Sequence record: NC_070966.1
Length of the DNA: 64,000 bases
Direction: 5' to 3' (one strand)
Below are positions 20,304 to 64,000 of the stretch, one piece after another (within the stretch, counting starts at the first letter, position 1; each line of letters begins with the position of its first letter). Position numbers and translations under genes: made by a program. Under the pieces are notes generated by a model that saw only the letters and a list, made by a program, of their open reading frames with translations, did no database searches and was not told where the DNA came from.

Positions 20304-20328
20304 AATGCTATCCTTAATGAGATATAAA

Positions 20329-20360
20329 TGTTAGTAGGTGAAATTTTCCACCTACTAACA
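20329..20360 (-). terminator. Intrinsic terminator
   Basis: TGTTAGTAGGTG...CACCTACTAACA 12-bp stem followed by TTTATAT on the minus strand. Confidence 0.75.
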
Positions 20361-20374
20361 GATTTGAGAGTCTA

Positions 20375-24217: not shown

Positions 24218-24248
24218 TTCAGGTATCTTACCTCCGAACATAGAATAG

Positions 24249-24279
24249 TGACGCTACTTACATCGTGTAAGTAGCGTCA
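24249..24279 (-). terminator. Intrinsic terminator / perfect hairpin
   Basis: TGACGCTACTTAC...GTAAGTAGCGTCA perfect 13-bp stem. Confidence 0.75.
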
Positions 24280-24285
24280 TATTAC

Positions 24286-28136: not shown

Positions 28137-28160
28137 GGAATAATCCTTAAGGAGACATTA

Positions 28161-28186
28161 GAGAGGTCACAAGAATGTGACCTCTC
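28161..28186 (-). terminator. Hairpin / terminator after the endolysin
   Basis: GAGAGGTCAC...GTGACCTCTC 10-bp stem. Confidence 0.65.
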
Positions 28187-28200
28187 CCTCGTCAATTCAA

Positions 28201-35524: not shown

Positions 35525-35542
35525 TTTAATACTCCTGAAGAG

Positions 35543-35573
35543 AAGGAGATAGGATTTAAGATCCTATCTCCTT
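35543..35573 (-). terminator. Hairpin / terminator
   Basis: AAGGAGATAGGAT...ATCCTATCTCCTT perfect 13-bp stem. Confidence 0.7.
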
Positions 35574-35578
35574 ATGTC

Positions 35579-35806
35579 TTAGACTTCGTCCCAGGTAAAC
35601 TCACCCTTGTATCTAAATCTCTTACCAGTATCGTTTTCGACAACAATCGTACCGCGTACAGGATTCATTGTCTTACGATCTTCAGAAGATCTGTACAGAA
35701 GAGAAGGTTCACTTGCAGATACCTCTACGAATGTATGAGTGTACTCAATAACTCGCGTAGGATCTTCTTGTCCAAGTTCTGGTTTGACTTCAGTTTTCTT
35801 AGCCAT
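35579..35806 (-). CDS. Hypothetical protein
   Basis: AAGGTG RBS; in operon. Confidence 0.55.
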   Translation of the reverse strand: MAKKTEVKPELGQEDPTRVIEYTHTFVEVSASEPSLLYRSSEDRKTMNPVRGTIVVENDTGKRFRYKGEFTWDEV

Positions 35807-35815
35807 ATTTACACC

Positions 35816-38800
35816 TTAAGAGATTGTAAGTCTGATATTACGAATTGCAGGAGCAGTTGTAAAGTCAGTCTTGTCTAGAGTTAATCTCAGTCGACTTGCG
35901 TTAGCAGCCAGACCTGTATACGTGTAGACTGAAGTCGTCCACTCGTTACCGATTTGAGTACTAGATACGAAAGTCATTGAGGCAAACGATGAGTTAGCCA
36001 ACTGGACTGATGGTTGGAAGGTTGACCCTGTAGGAACATACTGATCGATAACGAGCTTGAGAGTCGCTGGCGTAGTAGATCCATTAGGAATGTCAAACTG
36101 ACGAGAAGTATACGTACCAGGCTTAACAGGTGTTCCACCATATAAGCAGAGACCCTTTCCGATAATCGGAGACTTGTTAGTAGATGATGAGATCATATCT
36201 ACTTTAAGTAGAACCGTACCAGAAAGTGGGACTGTATAGAGAGGAATACCAGGAGTGATATCGTACTGAGTACCTGCTTGATCCTGAAGATAGAATCTTG
36301 CTGTTGTACTCTGAGGAACCGTAATCGTCTCGTCTGATAGAACCCAATCAGAGATTGAGGTCAATCCTGTTAGAGTTAGAAGTGTAGCTGTCGAAGTTCC
36401 ACTAGTGTAGACAGCTTTTCTCAGAATCATCGTCAAGTCAGAGTCCTGGAATGCAGTCCATGTAGACTCGTTAGCCGAGACTTGGAATACACCACCATAA
36501 GGCTGCTGAGTGACACGCTTCTGAGTAAGCATATCATTGTAACCGAGTTTAGCAATACCTACTGAACCAGCAGGTTGAGATGTAAGTACAACAAGTGCCT
36601 TTTCATCACCTCGAGATACAGGAATTGGAGACTCGAATGAAATCTTATTCCAACCTGCTACAACACTGGCTTTCTTGATACGACCAGACTCTGACTGCGT
36701 AGCAGATAGAGGAATACCGTATTCAGCTTCTGCTACCTTGGTAACGATATCGTCATCTGGTAGCTCTGTAACATACAGTGAAACTGATGTCAAGTCACCG
36801 TCATCTTCATCCAGAACGAATGTTTCAGCAATCGGATCGTAATAAACAACTTCAGTAGTAGCCGTCGTCATGACACGAAGGACCGCACTGGCAGTTGTAT
36901 TACTTGACAGTCCTACACCTTTGATTTCGTAGTTGTTAGTAGGCGTACCTGCTGCAACTGAGAGGTTATAAGTGTAAGAACCACTACCATCTGCTGTTAC
37001 GTTCTGACTGATGGAACGATACGTAATATGAATCGTTTCACCTGGAGCAAATCCTAAGAATCGAGCCTGAACAGTTTCTGTCGTGATCGTACTAGTCTTA
37101 GTCTGAGACGTCAACGGAGTTGAGAACAGATCACGAATTGTATTCCAGACGTTCTTCTTCCAAGATCCTGTAGCAGATGGAATTGTACGATACTGATACC
37201 AGATCGTAGTCTGCGTGATATTGGATGGAGTTAACTGGAGCTGACCAATAGGAGGTGCACCTGCAACTGCATAAGGATTGATCTTCTGACTAGTCGTAAC
37301 TTGTGTCTGACTAATTACATCAGTTTCCGTGAATGGAAGAGTTGTAGTAGCAGATGTAACACCAAGTCTGTTGTATGTTGAATCAAGAATCAGAGATTCA
37401 AGATACAGAATCATATTGTTAGTAAGACCTAGGTCTTGCTTAACATTCGACTTCAAGTTATCAACGAACAGATTTCTCTTGTTAGTTGTCGGATCTGTTG
37501 AACGTGCACTATCCATTAGCGATAGAGTTGCAACATTATCTTCAACTGAGAAGAGTCTTGATTTCAGACTATTCAATTCTGACTGCGGAATATTAGTAAC
37601 GGTATCTGCAGTAATTACAGGATTCGAACCATTGATCAATTCGATCGTGAACAGTGAAAGAGCATTGCTCAGATACTGCGGAGGATTATAAGTTGTATAA
37701 CCTGGAGTACCTCTACTGATAACGAACTGCTTGTTCTCAGTAATACTGAGACGATCAATACGTTTCAAGAAGTAGTCGTAGTCAACGTAGAACACACTAC
37801 CATTAACAAGAACGTTACTTGAATCAAGAACGACTCCTAGACCGTCACCTGAAATCGTAGGTACGAACGTCGAGATGTAAGTATAAGTTACAGTGTAGGT
37901 TGAACCTGGAGCAGGTTCAGCACCACCTGGAGACCAGTTAATACTATCACCTGATACAATGTAATCTGTGTTTACAACGTAAGTCGTACCACCTTGTGTA
38001 ACGGATGATACTGCAAGAACTGGAGTATCTGGCAGTACGTCAATCGCTCCTGAGAAGCTACCGTGCGTAATCGTACGAGTTACAGACTTAGTACCTTGAA
38101 TACGAGTTACTGTATTGATCTTATTGTATCGAAGATTGTACGTTGCACTACCTGTGTAGGTATATGGTTCACCAGCTACTGCACGATTGTCAACAACAGG
38201 GTCGAATAGAACCTTCTGCTGAGTTTCAATGATAACTGGTACACCATTCACACGAGCTTTACCAGAACTGATATTAACAATCGCAGAATTACTACCATCG
38301 AATGAGTCAAACGATGCACTCATACCATAAAGAACAGTACTACCACGAGTTTCTCTATCGTACTGGTTAAGAAGCTTATTCATAACCAAGGATACATCAT
38401 CAGTCTGACGAGAGATCGTCTGAATGACACCATCAACAATAGTGATAATCGGGAAGAATACTTCATCACCGGTTAGCTCACCTTGTGCGATCCATCTTGC
38501 AGACATCTTCTCGCGCATAGCACCTGGCTGACCTACGTTAGGAGATGCAGGATCTGGCTCGAGAATGAGAGGATCTTCAAGTTCAGTGATGAGAACAGTC
38601 TTAGCAGCAACACCTACAACGTAGGTGCCAGTTGCAGTAATCGGAACTACTCGAGTAGGTACTTGAGCGGTTACACCATCAAGATATACCGTAGCATTCT
38701 TAAGAGTGATACCTGTAGTTGTAACAGCTTCAACTTCACCACCAGTAAGAATGCTACCGTTAGTGACAAGCTGAGTTAGAATGAGCTTTAGATCGTTTCT

Positions 38801-55549: not shown

Positions 55550-55610
55550 AATAAATCCTCTATTTTATATTCAGAATGAGTAGCAATCTACTTATTATAA
55601 ATATAAAGAA

Positions 55611-55636
55611 TGAGGTGGATCTTTCGACCCACCTCA
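55611..55636 (-). terminator. Terminator after the major capsid gene
   Basis: TGAGGTGGGTC GAAA GATCCACCTCA then TTCTTT. Confidence 0.85.
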
Positions 55637-55642
55637 CTAAAA

Positions 55643-59296: not shown

Positions 59297-59365
59297 GATT
59301 ATATCCTACACGGAGGGTCGTGCTACCGTCCCTCCTCCTGGAGTTATCTGAGGATTAAACGACTG

Positions 59366-60918: not shown

Positions 60919-62754
60919 CTACTTGTAAACTTGGAAGTCACTCGTACCTAGAATGCCTTCATAACTATTAGTAGGCTTACTACTTGAAGCGATAGCCTCA
61001 ATGAATTCTTCCGTTGTCGTATTTGCACGATAACGATTCATACCGAGTTTAGCACTCCAGATAGATCCGCAGATAGCATCAGCACCGTCTTTACTACCTT
61101 CCATAGGATGGTCGACCTTACGGGTACCAACTTCAAGTTCTTTCAATTCTTTACTTAGGATAGGATGCTTGATCCCATGCCATCTACTTTCAAGAATTGC
61201 GAGCTTGAATTCATTGTAAGGATCGAAAGTTCTATCGCAAGATAGAAGCTCAGTATTGAAACCTTCTAGAAGCAAGTCTTGACGAAGATTTGTAGACTGA
61301 TAACCATCGGTAGTAATGCAAGTGACTGGATAACCTCGAGCTCGAAGATCAATCATAAGATTCTTGATCTTATAAATTGGTACTTCTTGACCGATACGTG
61401 CCTCGATGTACATGACAAAGTCAGTACTGTATACCGGTGAGGACTCAACGATCTCCTTACCTGCGATAGCGTCAAATCGCCTCGTAGTAATGATACCATC
61501 AAGTCTCGTCGATGCAATACCAGTTTTATCGTGTTTGATACCAAGGTCAACATGAATAAATCTCGGACGACGATCCTTGTCAAGTTTAGTGAAGTCAATA
61601 AACTCAATCAATCTTTCATTCGGATTGAAGAAGTCAACAGATACCACATCCTTGTGAACAGGATTATCTTTCTTGAAGGACTCTTCGATCTTCTCCACTG
61701 ATGGAATGAATCGATGAGCTGCCTGAGTACTCTTACCAGCGATGTCCTGAAGTGCTCGGTAAATATCTTTCTCGAAGTTTACCTGATACTCAATTGGGAC
61801 ATCCATGATGTAGGATTCGTCAATACCAATCGTTCCAGTTTGTGGAGTGATAATGAACGGATCCTTGAATTGGTTACCTACGAATACCTTAAAGGTCTGA
61901 CCAGAATACTGAATCTTCCACGGAGGGAGAACCTTCCAGATCGGATTGTCCCAAATTCTAATCTTAGGATCGTCTTCTCTACCCTTAAGTAGATAATCTT
62001 CGATGAATGAACCTGAGTCAGTCTTCGAGGAGTCGATCCACATACGTCCTGGGTACGATTCATTCTTCATGAAACGTGACTGGAGACGAGCTAGAACACC
62101 GTTATAGTTCTCGACTGCCTGACCTGCAACCTTATTCTGGAAGTTAATTTCCGATAGAATAGTTGAGAAGACAGCTTTACCGAGAACGTCTGATGGACGA
62201 GAACCTGTAATGATATCAATATTGTTAGGAAGAATCGACAATTTACCTGAAGTCTTCTTCATCTCTGATTTGAAGAATGGTGAATTCTTAAGGTAAGTAA
62301 TGATCTGGTCGTAAAGAACGGTACCAGCTAGACTCTTCGTAGCGTTCATCAGAGCCAAGACGATCTTGGTACTCTTGATGAGATTATACTTTTCATGCGG
62401 ATCCTTAAGATACAGCAACTTACATAGATCGTAAGTCACACCTGCTAGTGCGCATGTAGACTTACCCTGACCAATCGATCCTGTAAGAACGATCTCAAGA
62501 TAAGGTGAGAAGAATGGATTAGGGTAGATCTCATAAAGAGCGCTACGCCAGATCGGATAGGTATTGTCACCAAACATGTCACCCATGAAGTAATCATCAT
62601 CGATGAATTTGTCAATGGTAGGTGGAGCATCTACGTACCCTCCCATTTTAGCGAGAGTACGTAGTGTTTCAGTCTTACCATGAGCAGCCATGAGATTCTG
62701 TACAAGAGCTCCCATCGACTGATCAACAGGACTCGTGTTATTCTCAGTGCTCAA
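60919..62754 (-). CDS. Terminase large subunit
   Basis: GSIGQGKS Walker A; nuclease HVDLG, TTDGYQS, VDHP.EGSKDGADA. Confidence 0.92.
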   Translation of the reverse strand: MSTENNTSPVDQSMGALVQNLMAAHGKTETLRTLAKMGGYVDAPPTIDKFIDDDYFMGDMFGDNTYPIWRSALYEIYPNPFFSPYLEIVLTGSIGQGKSTCALAGVTYDLCKLLYLKDPHEKYNLIKSTKIVLALMNATKSLAGTVLYDQIITYLKNSPFFKSEMKKTSGKLSILPNNIDIITGSRPSDVLGKAVFSTILSEINFQNKVAGQAVENYNGVLARLQSRFMKNESYPGRMWIDSSKTDSGSFIEDYLLKGREDDPKIRIWDNPIWKVLPPWKIQYSGQTFKVFVGNQFKDPFIITPQTGTIGIDESYIMDVPIEYQVNFEKDIYRALQDIAGKSTQAAHRFIPSVEKIEESFKKDNPVHKDVVSVDFFNPNERLIEFIDFTKLDKDRRPRFIHVDLGIKHDKTGIASTRLDGIITTRRFDAIAGKEIVESSPVYSTDFVMYIEARIGQEVPIYKIKNLMIDLRARGYPVTCITTDGYQSTNLRQDLLLEGFNTELLSCDRTFDPYNEFKLAILESRWHGIKHPILSKELKELEVGTRKVDHPMEGSKDGADAICGSIWSAKLGMNRYRANTTTEEFIEAIASSSKPTNSYEGILGTSDFQVYK

Positions 62755-62762
62755 GTGAAATC

Positions 62763-63266
62763 CTATTCTTCAGTTGTTTTCTTAGGTGGAGCAGCTACAG
62801 CATTAACATTCAAGTTAGATAGAATCGCAGAGACGATCGCTTGAACGTCGGTACCTGCTTGAGTCTTATCTGCTGGATCAGTTGCAGCTAGAGCGAGTAG
62901 CTGAGCTTCAACATTACCCCAGTCGATTGACTTAAGAGTCGATCTAACGTAAGACGAAGATTCGTTAAGTGCTTCAACACCCATCTTGTAGAGACCAACC
63001 AGTTTGGATGGTTCTAGATTACGAATCGTGTCTTCACTAAAGACCTGACTTTCAAGATTATATACAAGCGCAGATAGATTCGAGACTCTCTTAGCCTGAA
63101 CTTCTGCTAGACCGAAGAGGGCCAGTTGAAGACCGACCTCCTTGATTCTCCAGTCATTGAATCCATTTACCTTACGATCGACAAGCTGAATAGCGTAGTC
63201 AATCGATTTCGTTAGTTCTGGTGCTTGGGAACTTTCTGAGAATTCATCAGTCAGATCATCACTCAT
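62763..63266 (-). CDS. Probable terminase small subunit
   Basis: Helical 167-aa ORF directly upstream of TerL; AAGGAG RBS. Confidence 0.55.
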   Translation of the reverse strand: MSDDLTDEFSESSQAPELTKSIDYAIQLVDRKVNGFNDWRIKEVGLQLALFGLAEVQAKRVSNLSALVYNLESQVFSEDTIRNLEPSKLVGLYKMGVEALNESSSYVRSTLKSIDWGNVEAQLLALAATDPADKTQAGTDVQAIVSAILSNLNVNAVAAPPKKTTEE

Positions 63267-63291
63267 CAGGTTCTCCTTAATTGAATAAAGT

Positions 63292-63317
63292 TGGTGTCCC
63301 GATTTCTCAGGACACCA
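63292..63317 (-). promoter_or_regulatory. GAAA-tetraloop hairpin in the leader of the terminase operon
   Basis: UGGUGUCCUGA GAAA UCGGGACACCA: 11 bp including a U-G pair that forms only on the minus strand. Confidence 0.7.
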
Positions 63318-63376
63318 TAGTATTATTACATTATATAAATGCCCTTATAAACTGGGCGCTACTGAAAATTGATAAA

Positions 63377-63599
63377 GGGAGGAGATCAAATAACTTTGAC
63401 GAGGATAGTTACGATCTCCTCCCATGCTACTCAGAAAGAGGAGTAGCCACTCAGGCGACAAGACAGACTAGAGAGCTCCAGCACAAACTCAATCTAGCGA
63501 AACGTCTCGTCAGCCAACTACCAAGGAGAGGTTCCCAGTAAGAAGCGCTTCTCATGTATTATGAAAGCTAGTTCTTCCAGAAGGGTTACCTTAAAGAAC
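63377..63599 (-). ncRNA. Candidate structured RNA of five consecutive helices
   Basis: Stems at 63571-63599, 63547-63568, 63454-63515, 63426-63447 and 63377-63423; G-U pairs favour the minus strand; U-rich tail after the last stem. Confidence 0.5.
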
Positions 63600-63729
63600 T
63601 TTCCGACCGGCGTATTGCGGCGCACCCTTCTTCTGAGGAGGACCGACTTACATTATCGATTATTAGATAATTGTAGAATAACTCACGACAAAATAAAACG
63701 CTCTTTCTTTCTTGATTCACGGTTACCTG

Positions 63730-63758
63730 CAGCGAATTGAGCTCTCAAAAGCCTTCCT
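63730..63758 (+). promoter_or_regulatory. Bipartite motif CAGCGAA-N13-AGCCTTCCT, copy B
   Basis: CAGCGAA ttgagctctcaaa AGCCTTCCT, followed by CTACG as near copy A. Confidence 0.7.
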
Positions 63759-63947
63759 CTACGTAATGCCAGGACCCTCCTTATTATCACATGACATTCC
63801 ACACGAGATTGCATTCGCATTATTCTTATTATAAGAATTGTAATAGACTTTATTACTTATCTCGATTTTATCCTACCTTATGGAATTTCATTTTCTCCTT
63901 ATTAAAATAAAAATTTTACGAATTTTCACGATCTGACTTTCTTAATT

Positions 63948-64000
63948 AGTTATTATATTATAATAATAATTATAATTATTATATAATTATTATAATAAGA
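63948..64000. repeat. Almost pure A/T tract of TTATAAT-like palindromic units
   Basis: ttattatattataataataattataattattatataattattataataaga. Confidence 0.7.

Follow-up and report, generated by a model that had tools for sequence, protein, structure and literature searches.

The stretch of DNA analysed here, referred to as the window, is 64,000 nucleotides long and was assigned by blastn to Rhizobium phage RHph_TM30 (TM30; MN988521.1, 207,623 bp; Kleczkowskaviridae, Cuauhnahuacvirus), of which it forms the final 64 kb; subtracting 143,623 from a record position gives the window position. Two sets of genes diverge from an intergenic region of 817 bp in which no features are annotated. On the minus strand the order is a 167-aa gene followed by the genes for TerL, portal, prohead protease (Pfam Peptidase_S77) and a Gp23-type capsid protein, and these belong to a late block of packaging and structural genes of about 47 kb in RHph_TM30-like rhizobiophages. 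The early genes begin on the plus strand, beyond the record's origin. The 167-aa protein matches no family in Pfam or PHROG and its AlphaFold model is all-helical but poor (pLDDT 47); the label 'small terminase' for its gene is putative and comes from gene position alone. In the clade, many relatives of TerL exceed it in length by 100-400 residues and contain intein or Hint and HNH domains; the TM30 TerL is intein-free. Within the intergenic region, on the minus strand, the late block is headed by the RNA element described below (Table 1). The literature on these phages makes no mention of an RNA at this locus.

Other features of the intergenic region were also recorded. An AT-only block at 63940-64000, in the centre of the divergent region, is made of overlapping palindromes and direct repeats and shows a 3-nt length polymorphism among close relatives; it could serve as an unwinding element or a promoter spacer. 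In phages Y65 and TM39 a 33-codon gene is annotated at L003:138-239 and L004:138-239 (window about 63762-63863, minus strand). It depends on an A-to-G change that makes an ATG, is absent from TM30, and is probably a spurious call. On the early side, a repeat of about 45 nt stands ahead of many early genes and consists of GGTTCACTTAG, a few bases, and then AAGGGATTCTTCTTTGAAGG with a small variable hairpin. One copy lies just past the window end (L002:25-70, record 25-70) and 12 more at plus-strand sites between 14 kb and 107 kb of the record. Of the repeat core, RGGATTCTTYYT, the plus strand has 13 copies and the minus strand one, whereas a control word gave 2 and 0. The repeat probably serves the phage as an early or middle promoter, or else as a 5' regulatory element, and its first copy shares the intergenic region of the RNA in the opposite orientation.

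Table 1. The RNA element, the features around it and the first genes of the late block (window coordinates)
Feature	Position	Strand	Remarks
−10-like box, GATAAT then GTAA	63648..63657	−	From sequence; marks the upstream limit of the stretch without variation in the TM30 group
5' domain, tentative three-way junction P2/P3/P4	63516..63647	−	Fold prediction
P2	63606-63610 with 63535-63539	−	5' domain
P3	63594-63599 with 63571-63576	−	5' domain
P4	63561-63568 with 63547-63555	−	5' domain; well-kept hairpin
P5, 62-nt long arm	63454..63515	−	Three stacked helices; z −4.61 alone; apical loop GUGCUG
P6, GCUACUC/GAGUAGC hairpin	63426..63447	−	Lineage-specific insert; TM30 group and third lineage (contigs)
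P7, 3' hairpin	63377..63423	−	Perfect 11-bp stem, 5-6 bp extension, 11-nt loop
Spacer after P7	63350..63376	−	Variable; U-rich in the TM30 group only
Promoter-like site, TTTATA, 18 nt, AATAAT	63322..63351	−	Scan match; TG before the second hexamer
P8, 11-bp hairpin	63292..63317	−	Followed by a U-rich run, a ribosome-binding site and ATG at 63266
167-aa gene, small-terminase position	62763..63266	−	Annotated hypothetical; immediately upstream of TerL
TerL	60919-62754	−	Directly downstream of the 167-aa gene

The minus strand at 63377-63640 folds with a free energy of −101.5 kcal/mol and a z score of −5.25, and 0 of 200 shuffled sequences folded equally well; the corresponding values for the plus strand are −82.9 kcal/mol and −2.95. 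An initial annotation, made from the sequence alone, had listed five adjacent helices in this interval, and all five were found in their places. When subregions were folded separately, a strong signal was obtained from the long arm P5 and none from the 5' part (63516-63650, 135 nt; z −0.08). This result indicates that the thermodynamic signal originates in the 3' half of the element. The 185 nt upstream of the element are unstructured (z 0.14), giving it a sharp 5' edge. Two features had been absent from the earlier list of helices: the extension of P7 with its loop, and the conserved hairpin P8 downstream.

Close relatives of TM30 were of limited use for analysing this fold. GenBank blastn returned ten same-genus records only, which are 98.7-100% identical and without variation inside the RNA, and such genomes are unable to show covariation. 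In a seven-record alignment 293 consecutive columns (63365-63657) are invariant. A run of this length has a P of about 0.10 by permutation test and is not significant alone, and it was dropped as evidence. Four variable columns at 63658-63682 lie just upstream of the −10-like box and invariance begins at the box; the sole variable column near the RNA on the other side is 63364, just after the T-run. The box is a putative start region of the RNA, and a sigma-70 scan did not flag it.

A more distant homologue was reached through the 167-aa protein, which has three metagenomic relatives only, the closest being 84% identical and encoded on JGI contig L009. Directly upstream of this homologue L009 carries a recognisable copy of the RNA, truncated on the 5' side where the contig ends, that folds with a z of −4.87. 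A covariance model (R1) built from the TM30 sequence alone with the helices reported here (281 positions, 60 pairs) matched L009:18-214 with an E value of 1.8e-16, and no other match was found in the window, the rest of the genome or the other fetched loci. In the TM30/L009 alignment, 98.2% of cells are standard pairs, with 13 pairs changed on both sides, 5 on one side and 2 broken, although such counts lean toward structure in a model-fitted alignment of two distinct sequences only. Slid controls, in which partners were moved by 1-3 columns, gave 40-53% paired cells and 0-3 double changes. RNAalifold recovered the same architecture from the same alignment, with 15 compensatory pairs. For P4, P5 and P7 the alignment is fixed by the flanks and pair probabilities from each lineage's own partition function are 0.87-1.00; these three helices alone contain nine double changes. 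The comparison of homologues that the initial annotation had proposed as a check does reveal compensatory changes, in L009.

The individual parts of the element are supported to different degrees. In the 5' domain, P2-P4 have pair probabilities of 0.86-0.99 in TM30. By L009 thermodynamics P2 and P3 have a probability of 0.00, and of the whole domain only P4 is supported, with the consensus structure at −11.2 versus −29.1 kcal/mol for the minimum free energy fold. Compensatory pairs of the 5' domain occur solely in the model-fitted alignment. As the L009 sequence, taken alone, favours a different fold over P2 and P3, the three-way junction is regarded as tentative. The inner AAGG/CCUU stem that had been proposed for this end is present in the TM30 sequence but is not kept in L009. 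By contrast with P2 and P3, the long arm P5 has pair probabilities of 0.96-0.99 in TM30 and in L009. Its internal loops are conserved in sequence, and comparison of the two lineages shows double changes in five of its pairs, one-sided changes in three and loss of pairing in two. The GCUACUC/GAGUAGC hairpin, P6, is likewise present in the TM30 sequence as claimed, but its pair probability there is 0.01, because its 3' half is able to pair with 63626-63640, and the hairpin is missing from L009.

P7 is the other well-supported arm. Its pair probabilities are 0.91-1.00 in TM30 and in L009, and the two lineages differ by double changes at three pairs, with no pair broken. Its loop, AUCCUCGUCAA at 63396-63406, is identical at 10 of 11 positions in L009. 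The 207-kb genome contains exactly one copy of the loop word, and a search for its targets gave scattered one-mismatch words in coding DNA and nothing else. The tail that follows the stem is UUUAUCAAUUUU in TM30 (UUUAUC...) and begins with ACU in L009 and in a third lineage introduced below. The U-rich tail noted earlier after the 11-bp stem thus exists in TM30 but is peculiar to the TM30 group. As the U-tract is not conserved, P7 seems to be kept for something beyond plain termination. As a candidate intrinsic terminator P7 is conserved and very stable; the terminator scan flagged P8, and the P7 loop is above the limit of that scan. An annotated transcription termination factor Rho, encoded by the 248-aa early gene EVB93_086 (record 35958-36704, outside the window), may bear on how termination is handled in RHph_TM30.

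The third lineage comes from Logan contigs of four root RNA-seq runs of one study, with a TerL and a 167-aa gene that are about 90% identical to those of TM30. It is known as listed differences rather than as contig letters and adds no pair counts. Throughout 63377-63497 it differs by at most one substitution and two single-base indels, and the indels lie outside helices, in the P6 loop (63435, a 1-nt deletion) and in the linker joining P5 and P6 (63451), with no change listed for P7. Set against a difference of about 10% in the flanking genes, this near-identity means that the 3' core is held well above coding level. The spacer (63350-63376) has six substitutions and two indels in 27 nt and is about 70% alike, and no change is listed for 63306-63349, an interval that takes in the promoter-like site and half of P8. 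In one contig, 186 unlike letters stand in place of 197 upstream of 63497 and the alignment resumes at 63695-63757, and the 5' domain in this lineage appears to have been replaced or to have diverged beyond 80%. Contigs from these RNA libraries span 63138-63482 and 63147-63435, running from the RNA through P7, the spacer and P8 into the coding region. The depth of the bridging contigs is 5.8-20 versus about 9 for TerL, although contigs of RNA libraries may derive from contaminating phage DNA and carry neither strand nor ends.

These data bear directly on whether the helices are merely chance hairpins in non-coding DNA with no function, a reading that we consider exceedingly improbable. It would accommodate a 5' domain without thermodynamic signal and an invariant run in close relatives that is not significant. 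It does not sit well with z scores below −4.6 in two lineages, with a model match at E 1.8e-16 accompanied by compensatory changes, or with a 3' half that is conserved well above the neighbouring coding DNA.

The question of which strand is under selection was approached through G-U pairs and folding energies. The assigned helices comprise 67 pairs in TM30 (8 G-U) and 56 in L009 (6 G-U). At least three G-U pairs had been claimed for the long arm, and our count on the minus strand is five, out of the eight in the whole TM30 model. In two of the double changes a U-A pair becomes G-U, a change that leaves only the minus strand paired. In TM30 as in L009, the energy of the sense strand is lower than that of its complement by 9-19 kcal/mol. 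These G-U pairs, the changes to G-U and the lower sense-strand energy favour an RNA transcribed in the orientation of the packaging genes and argue against a DNA cruciform or binding site. The initial annotation's view that selection acts on an RNA, either a phage ncRNA or a long leader of the packaging genes, and not on a cruciform is accordingly backed by the compensatory changes, the strand-specific G-U pairs and the conservation of the 3' half in the third lineage. A DNA-level element, such as a pac site or other inverted repeats bound by protein, to which any transcript would be irrelevant, is in our judgement very unlikely. It could draw on the adjoining terminase genes and on the opposite strand of L009, which also folds well (z −5.15). 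However, the 6-8 G-U pairs of each lineage are A-C mismatches on that other strand, the two compensatory changes to G-U and the energy difference speak for the sense strand, and pairing is kept while the helix sequence changes, which sites bound by protein as DNA do not need.

A small protein-coding gene was rejected as an explanation, as the sense frames of TM30 (17-35 codons) have no L009 counterpart except for one shared AUG. That AUG (MGGD...) lies just before P7 and the peptides diverge after four residues through a frame change; there is thus no conserved frame. Protein searches with a spurious antisense frame of 86 codons gave nothing related.

Cumulatively, these results indicate the following: 1) the element is a real, clade-specific and uncatalogued structured non-coding RNA of about 275 nt on the minus strand; and 2) its conserved core is P5 plus P7, downstream of a fast-evolving 5' domain whose structure is tentative.

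Family searches agree with its uncatalogued status. Rfam 15 at gathering thresholds gave no match in the window, which is the outcome of a check that the initial annotation had suggested. With E values up to 10, the interval 62900-64000 gave chance-level miRNA and snoRNA matches (E 1.7-9.6), none of them over 63377-63650. Contig L009 and the more distant loci L021, L022 and L028 had no Rfam match. The RNA had been described as neither tRNA-like nor a tmRNA, and ARAGORN finds neither in the window, with Rfam giving no family. At the start of the 167-aa gene (63227-63274, minus strand) CUGAUGA words are repeated, and a weak C/D-box snoRNA match there (E 2.2; 19.7 bits versus a threshold of 43) was taken as chance in coding sequence.

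The distribution of the element is narrow. It is present in single copy in the 207-kb genome, and a search of 151 genomes from the order to which the host belongs (defined by a Devosia genome) gave no match. Searches of IMG/VR with TerL and with the 167-aa family gave nothing; DNA patterns in the same database gave seven 18-mer matches, all in coding DNA and all rejected by the model, and none with two stricter patterns. Two patterns run against species genomes gave none or chance matches, with no model match in 80 loci. The model was also unmatched in relatives whose 167-aa protein is 42-64% identical or whose TerL is 55-62% identical (L021-L030, searched with models R1 and R2), at distances where a fast-evolving RNA could be unrecognisable. 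Two of these relatives have a coding gene in the RNA's place; such a gene is seen in L013, the one distant relative found in JGI metagenomes by the 167-aa family search. In L021 and L022 (TerL 58-62% identical) the hairpin before the homologous gene is kept and the RNA model is unmatched. In L028 (JGI metagenome; TerL 55% identical) a hairpin-rich stretch of 938 nt without a called gene, L028:1500-2437, lies about 1.5 kb upstream of the terminase genes; it has no Rfam or model match.

Between the RNA and the 167-aa gene, the organisation resembles that of other gaps in the late block. A single G+C-rich hairpin, in many cases with a GGAGG/CCUCC stem, is found in most of the gaps that separate late genes, and the ribosome-binding site of the next gene comes close behind (window 20304-20374, 24242-24285, 28137-28200, 35525-35815, 55550-55642 and 59297-59365). 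The layout of P8 matches these hairpins. P8 is a terminator-like scan match in TM30. The equivalent position in L009 gave such a match too, with a stem of entirely different sequence, and L021, a relative without the RNA, has a P8-like hairpin ahead of the homologous gene. The spacer upstream is unalignable in L009. The AATAAT of the promoter-like site is kept in L009, and TTTATA is found between P7 and P8 in all three lineages. On the sense strand TTTATA is enriched in late-block intergenic DNA (6 of 20 copies in 4.3% of bases), and the intergenic copies precede four genes, the capsid gene among them; for three genes, one of them the capsid gene, TTTATA comes after a late-gap hairpin. We infer that the site may function as a promoter, and the packaging genes probably have a promoter of their own. 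The word ATAATGTAA was also considered as a shared promoter box and was discarded, since its 8 copies genome-wide are close to chance.

The reading that we place first, at less than an even chance, is that the element is a cis-acting leader of the packaging and structural block, slightly ahead of a free RNA. Transcription would enter the late block from a promoter upstream of 63650, so that the RNA element would be made first. P5 and P7 would then act as RNA-level sites, through binding of a protein or RNA polymerase, processing, or partial termination, and together with P8 they would set the transcription and the stable message that reach the terminase genes. This reading is favoured by the position of the element, which in all three lineages has the same orientation as the block and lies directly upstream of its first gene, by the RNA-library contigs that run unbroken from the RNA into the coding region at a depth near that of TerL, by the lack of conservation of the U-tract after P7, and by the sharp 5' edge. 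It is weakened by L021 and L022, which keep the hairpin before the gene but give no match to the RNA model. The conserved promoter-like site between P7 and P8, next to a spacer that is not conserved, also means that the packaging genes may be transcribed without the RNA. A variant in which 63522-63531 sequesters the ribosome-binding site was seen in the long fold of TM30 and was rejected, as the pairing is impossible in L009.

A serious contender, though slightly less probable, is a free-standing accessory non-coding RNA gene with its own promoter near 63650 that ends at P7 and acts in trans. P7 would be a weak terminator or 3' stabiliser, like the hairpins after protein genes in RHph_TM30; the RNA would serve as a protein-binding scaffold, decoy or regulator; and the packaging genes would use the promoter at 63322-63351. 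Such a gene would explain why two conserved units, P5-P7 on one side and the promoter-like site with P8 on the other, are split by a drifting spacer, and it is in keeping with the enrichment of TTTATA ahead of late genes. The −10-like box lies exactly where invariance begins and P7 has a U-rich tail in TM30, but the putative promoter is weak and unflagged by the scan, and the U-tract is conserved neither in L009 nor in the third lineage. P8-like hairpins in relatives without the RNA make the RNA resemble an added module, and the conserved loop and internal-loop sequences suggest a bound partner. However, no partner, target or second copy was found, and the depth of the bridging contigs, being near that of TerL, gives no sign of an abundant small RNA. 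We see only a slim chance that the RNA is a trans-acting partner of the phage machinery or of host defence rather than a leader. It could then be a cofactor of the packaging motor or terminase in a myovirus that has T4-like capsid genes, pRNA-like but outside the phi29 group, or a decoy against RNA-sensing immunity, and the P7 loop and the P5 internal loops could be its contact sites.

The position of the element at the junction of early and late genes also raises the possibility of a primer or origin RNA, in which a structured transcript beside AT-rich DNA forms a persistent hybrid that primes replication. RNA II of ColE1 and the T4 origins, which combine a promoter with an unwinding element, are models of this kind. 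The main divergent intergenic region with its AT-rich palindromic repeats at 63940-64000 and the AT-rich spacer downstream of P7 would suit such a role. We nevertheless regard it as highly unlikely: there is no origin evidence, the GC skew of the window tracks gene orientation only, the AT-rich repeats lie upstream of the RNA and not downstream, and the spacer after P7 is the least conserved part.

In comparison with known systems, the closest likeness may be to the leader RNAs that head phage operons or to RNase III processing leaders, and the element would be a member of neither group. Leader RNAs at the head of late or early phage operons include the 6S RNA of lambda, which runs from PR' to tR', and the put RNAs of HK022, which consist of two hairpins. 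Like these, the element is non-coding, is transcribed first into a long operon under the leader reading, has strong hairpins, one of them terminator-like, and shares the orientation of the genes. Its two adjacent conserved stem-loops, P5 and P7, recall the two hairpins of put, and an anatomy of the put type appears compatible with a gap between P5 and P7 of 5 nt in L009 and 30 nt in TM30 and with hairpins downstream in the block. Unlike lambda 6S and put, the element is much larger (about 275 nt, with a 62-nt arm), scores with no such family in Rfam, is separated from the genes by a promoter-like site, and has no Q-like or Nun-like factor that we could find; RHph_TM30 also differs from the lambdoids in its T4-like capsid and prohead-protease genes. 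RNase III processing hairpins occur in phage leaders, for example T7 R0.3. The element resembles R0.3 in its long imperfect hairpin (more than 20 bp), its conserved internal loops and its place as a leader before the first gene of the block, although a processing site alone would leave the conservation of the P7 loop and the extra domains unexplained.

Other comparisons are more distant. With the pRNA of phi29 the element would share a functional tie between a phage non-coding RNA and DNA packaging and, tentatively, a three-way junction; the initial annotation had brought up co-purification with proheads. A phi29-type pRNA was rejected, as no Rfam family covers the element even at the relaxed E value given above. 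Ring formation was also rejected, as the loops examined by eye in TM30 and L009 (UAAGGUAAC..., AAUAC / UCUAAAU, GUGCUG and AUCCUCGUCAA) include no conserved complementary pair of at least 4 nt. In contrast to phi29, RHph_TM30 encodes a T4-type capsid and protease, has a gene where a small terminase would be expected, and is not a phi29-like podovirus. Staphylococcal phages reportedly make a structured RNA from the terminase region, cabRNA, that is sensed by CBASS. The likeness is that of a structured phage RNA at the terminase locus; however, cabRNA overlaps coding sequence and is defined by its host sensor, whereas the element is intergenic with a conserved architecture of its own. A riboswitch was rejected as well: the junction strands differ wholly between TM30 and L009 (CGGAAA / AACUGA; GCUUCUU / GGUA), the junction domain is replaced in the third lineage, and there is no Rfam riboswitch match. 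Within RHph_TM30 itself, the late-gene hairpins have a GGAGG/CCUCC-type stem, a weak U-run and a ribosome-binding site, and P8 and the outer stem of P7 fit this pattern. Those hairpins, however, are short, single and placed after a coding gene. P7 adds a 25-nt apical extension with a conserved loop, and what lies ahead of it is not a gene but over 200 nt of additional conserved structure.

To our knowledge, few non-coding RNAs have been characterised in large lytic phages and none has been described for rhizobiophages. The present, well-delimited candidate lies at the switch from early to late genes and combines two conserved hairpins and one conserved loop with a 5' domain that can be swapped. 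Its architecture is testable, and RHph_TM30 can be grown on laboratory strains of Rhizobium. If the RNA controls entry into the packaging operon, late gene regulation in phages with T4-like capsid genes would gain an RNA-based layer; a trans-acting RNA would be a new phage RNA gene. In either case, annotation is due in the ten GenBank genomes that carry this RNA unannotated.
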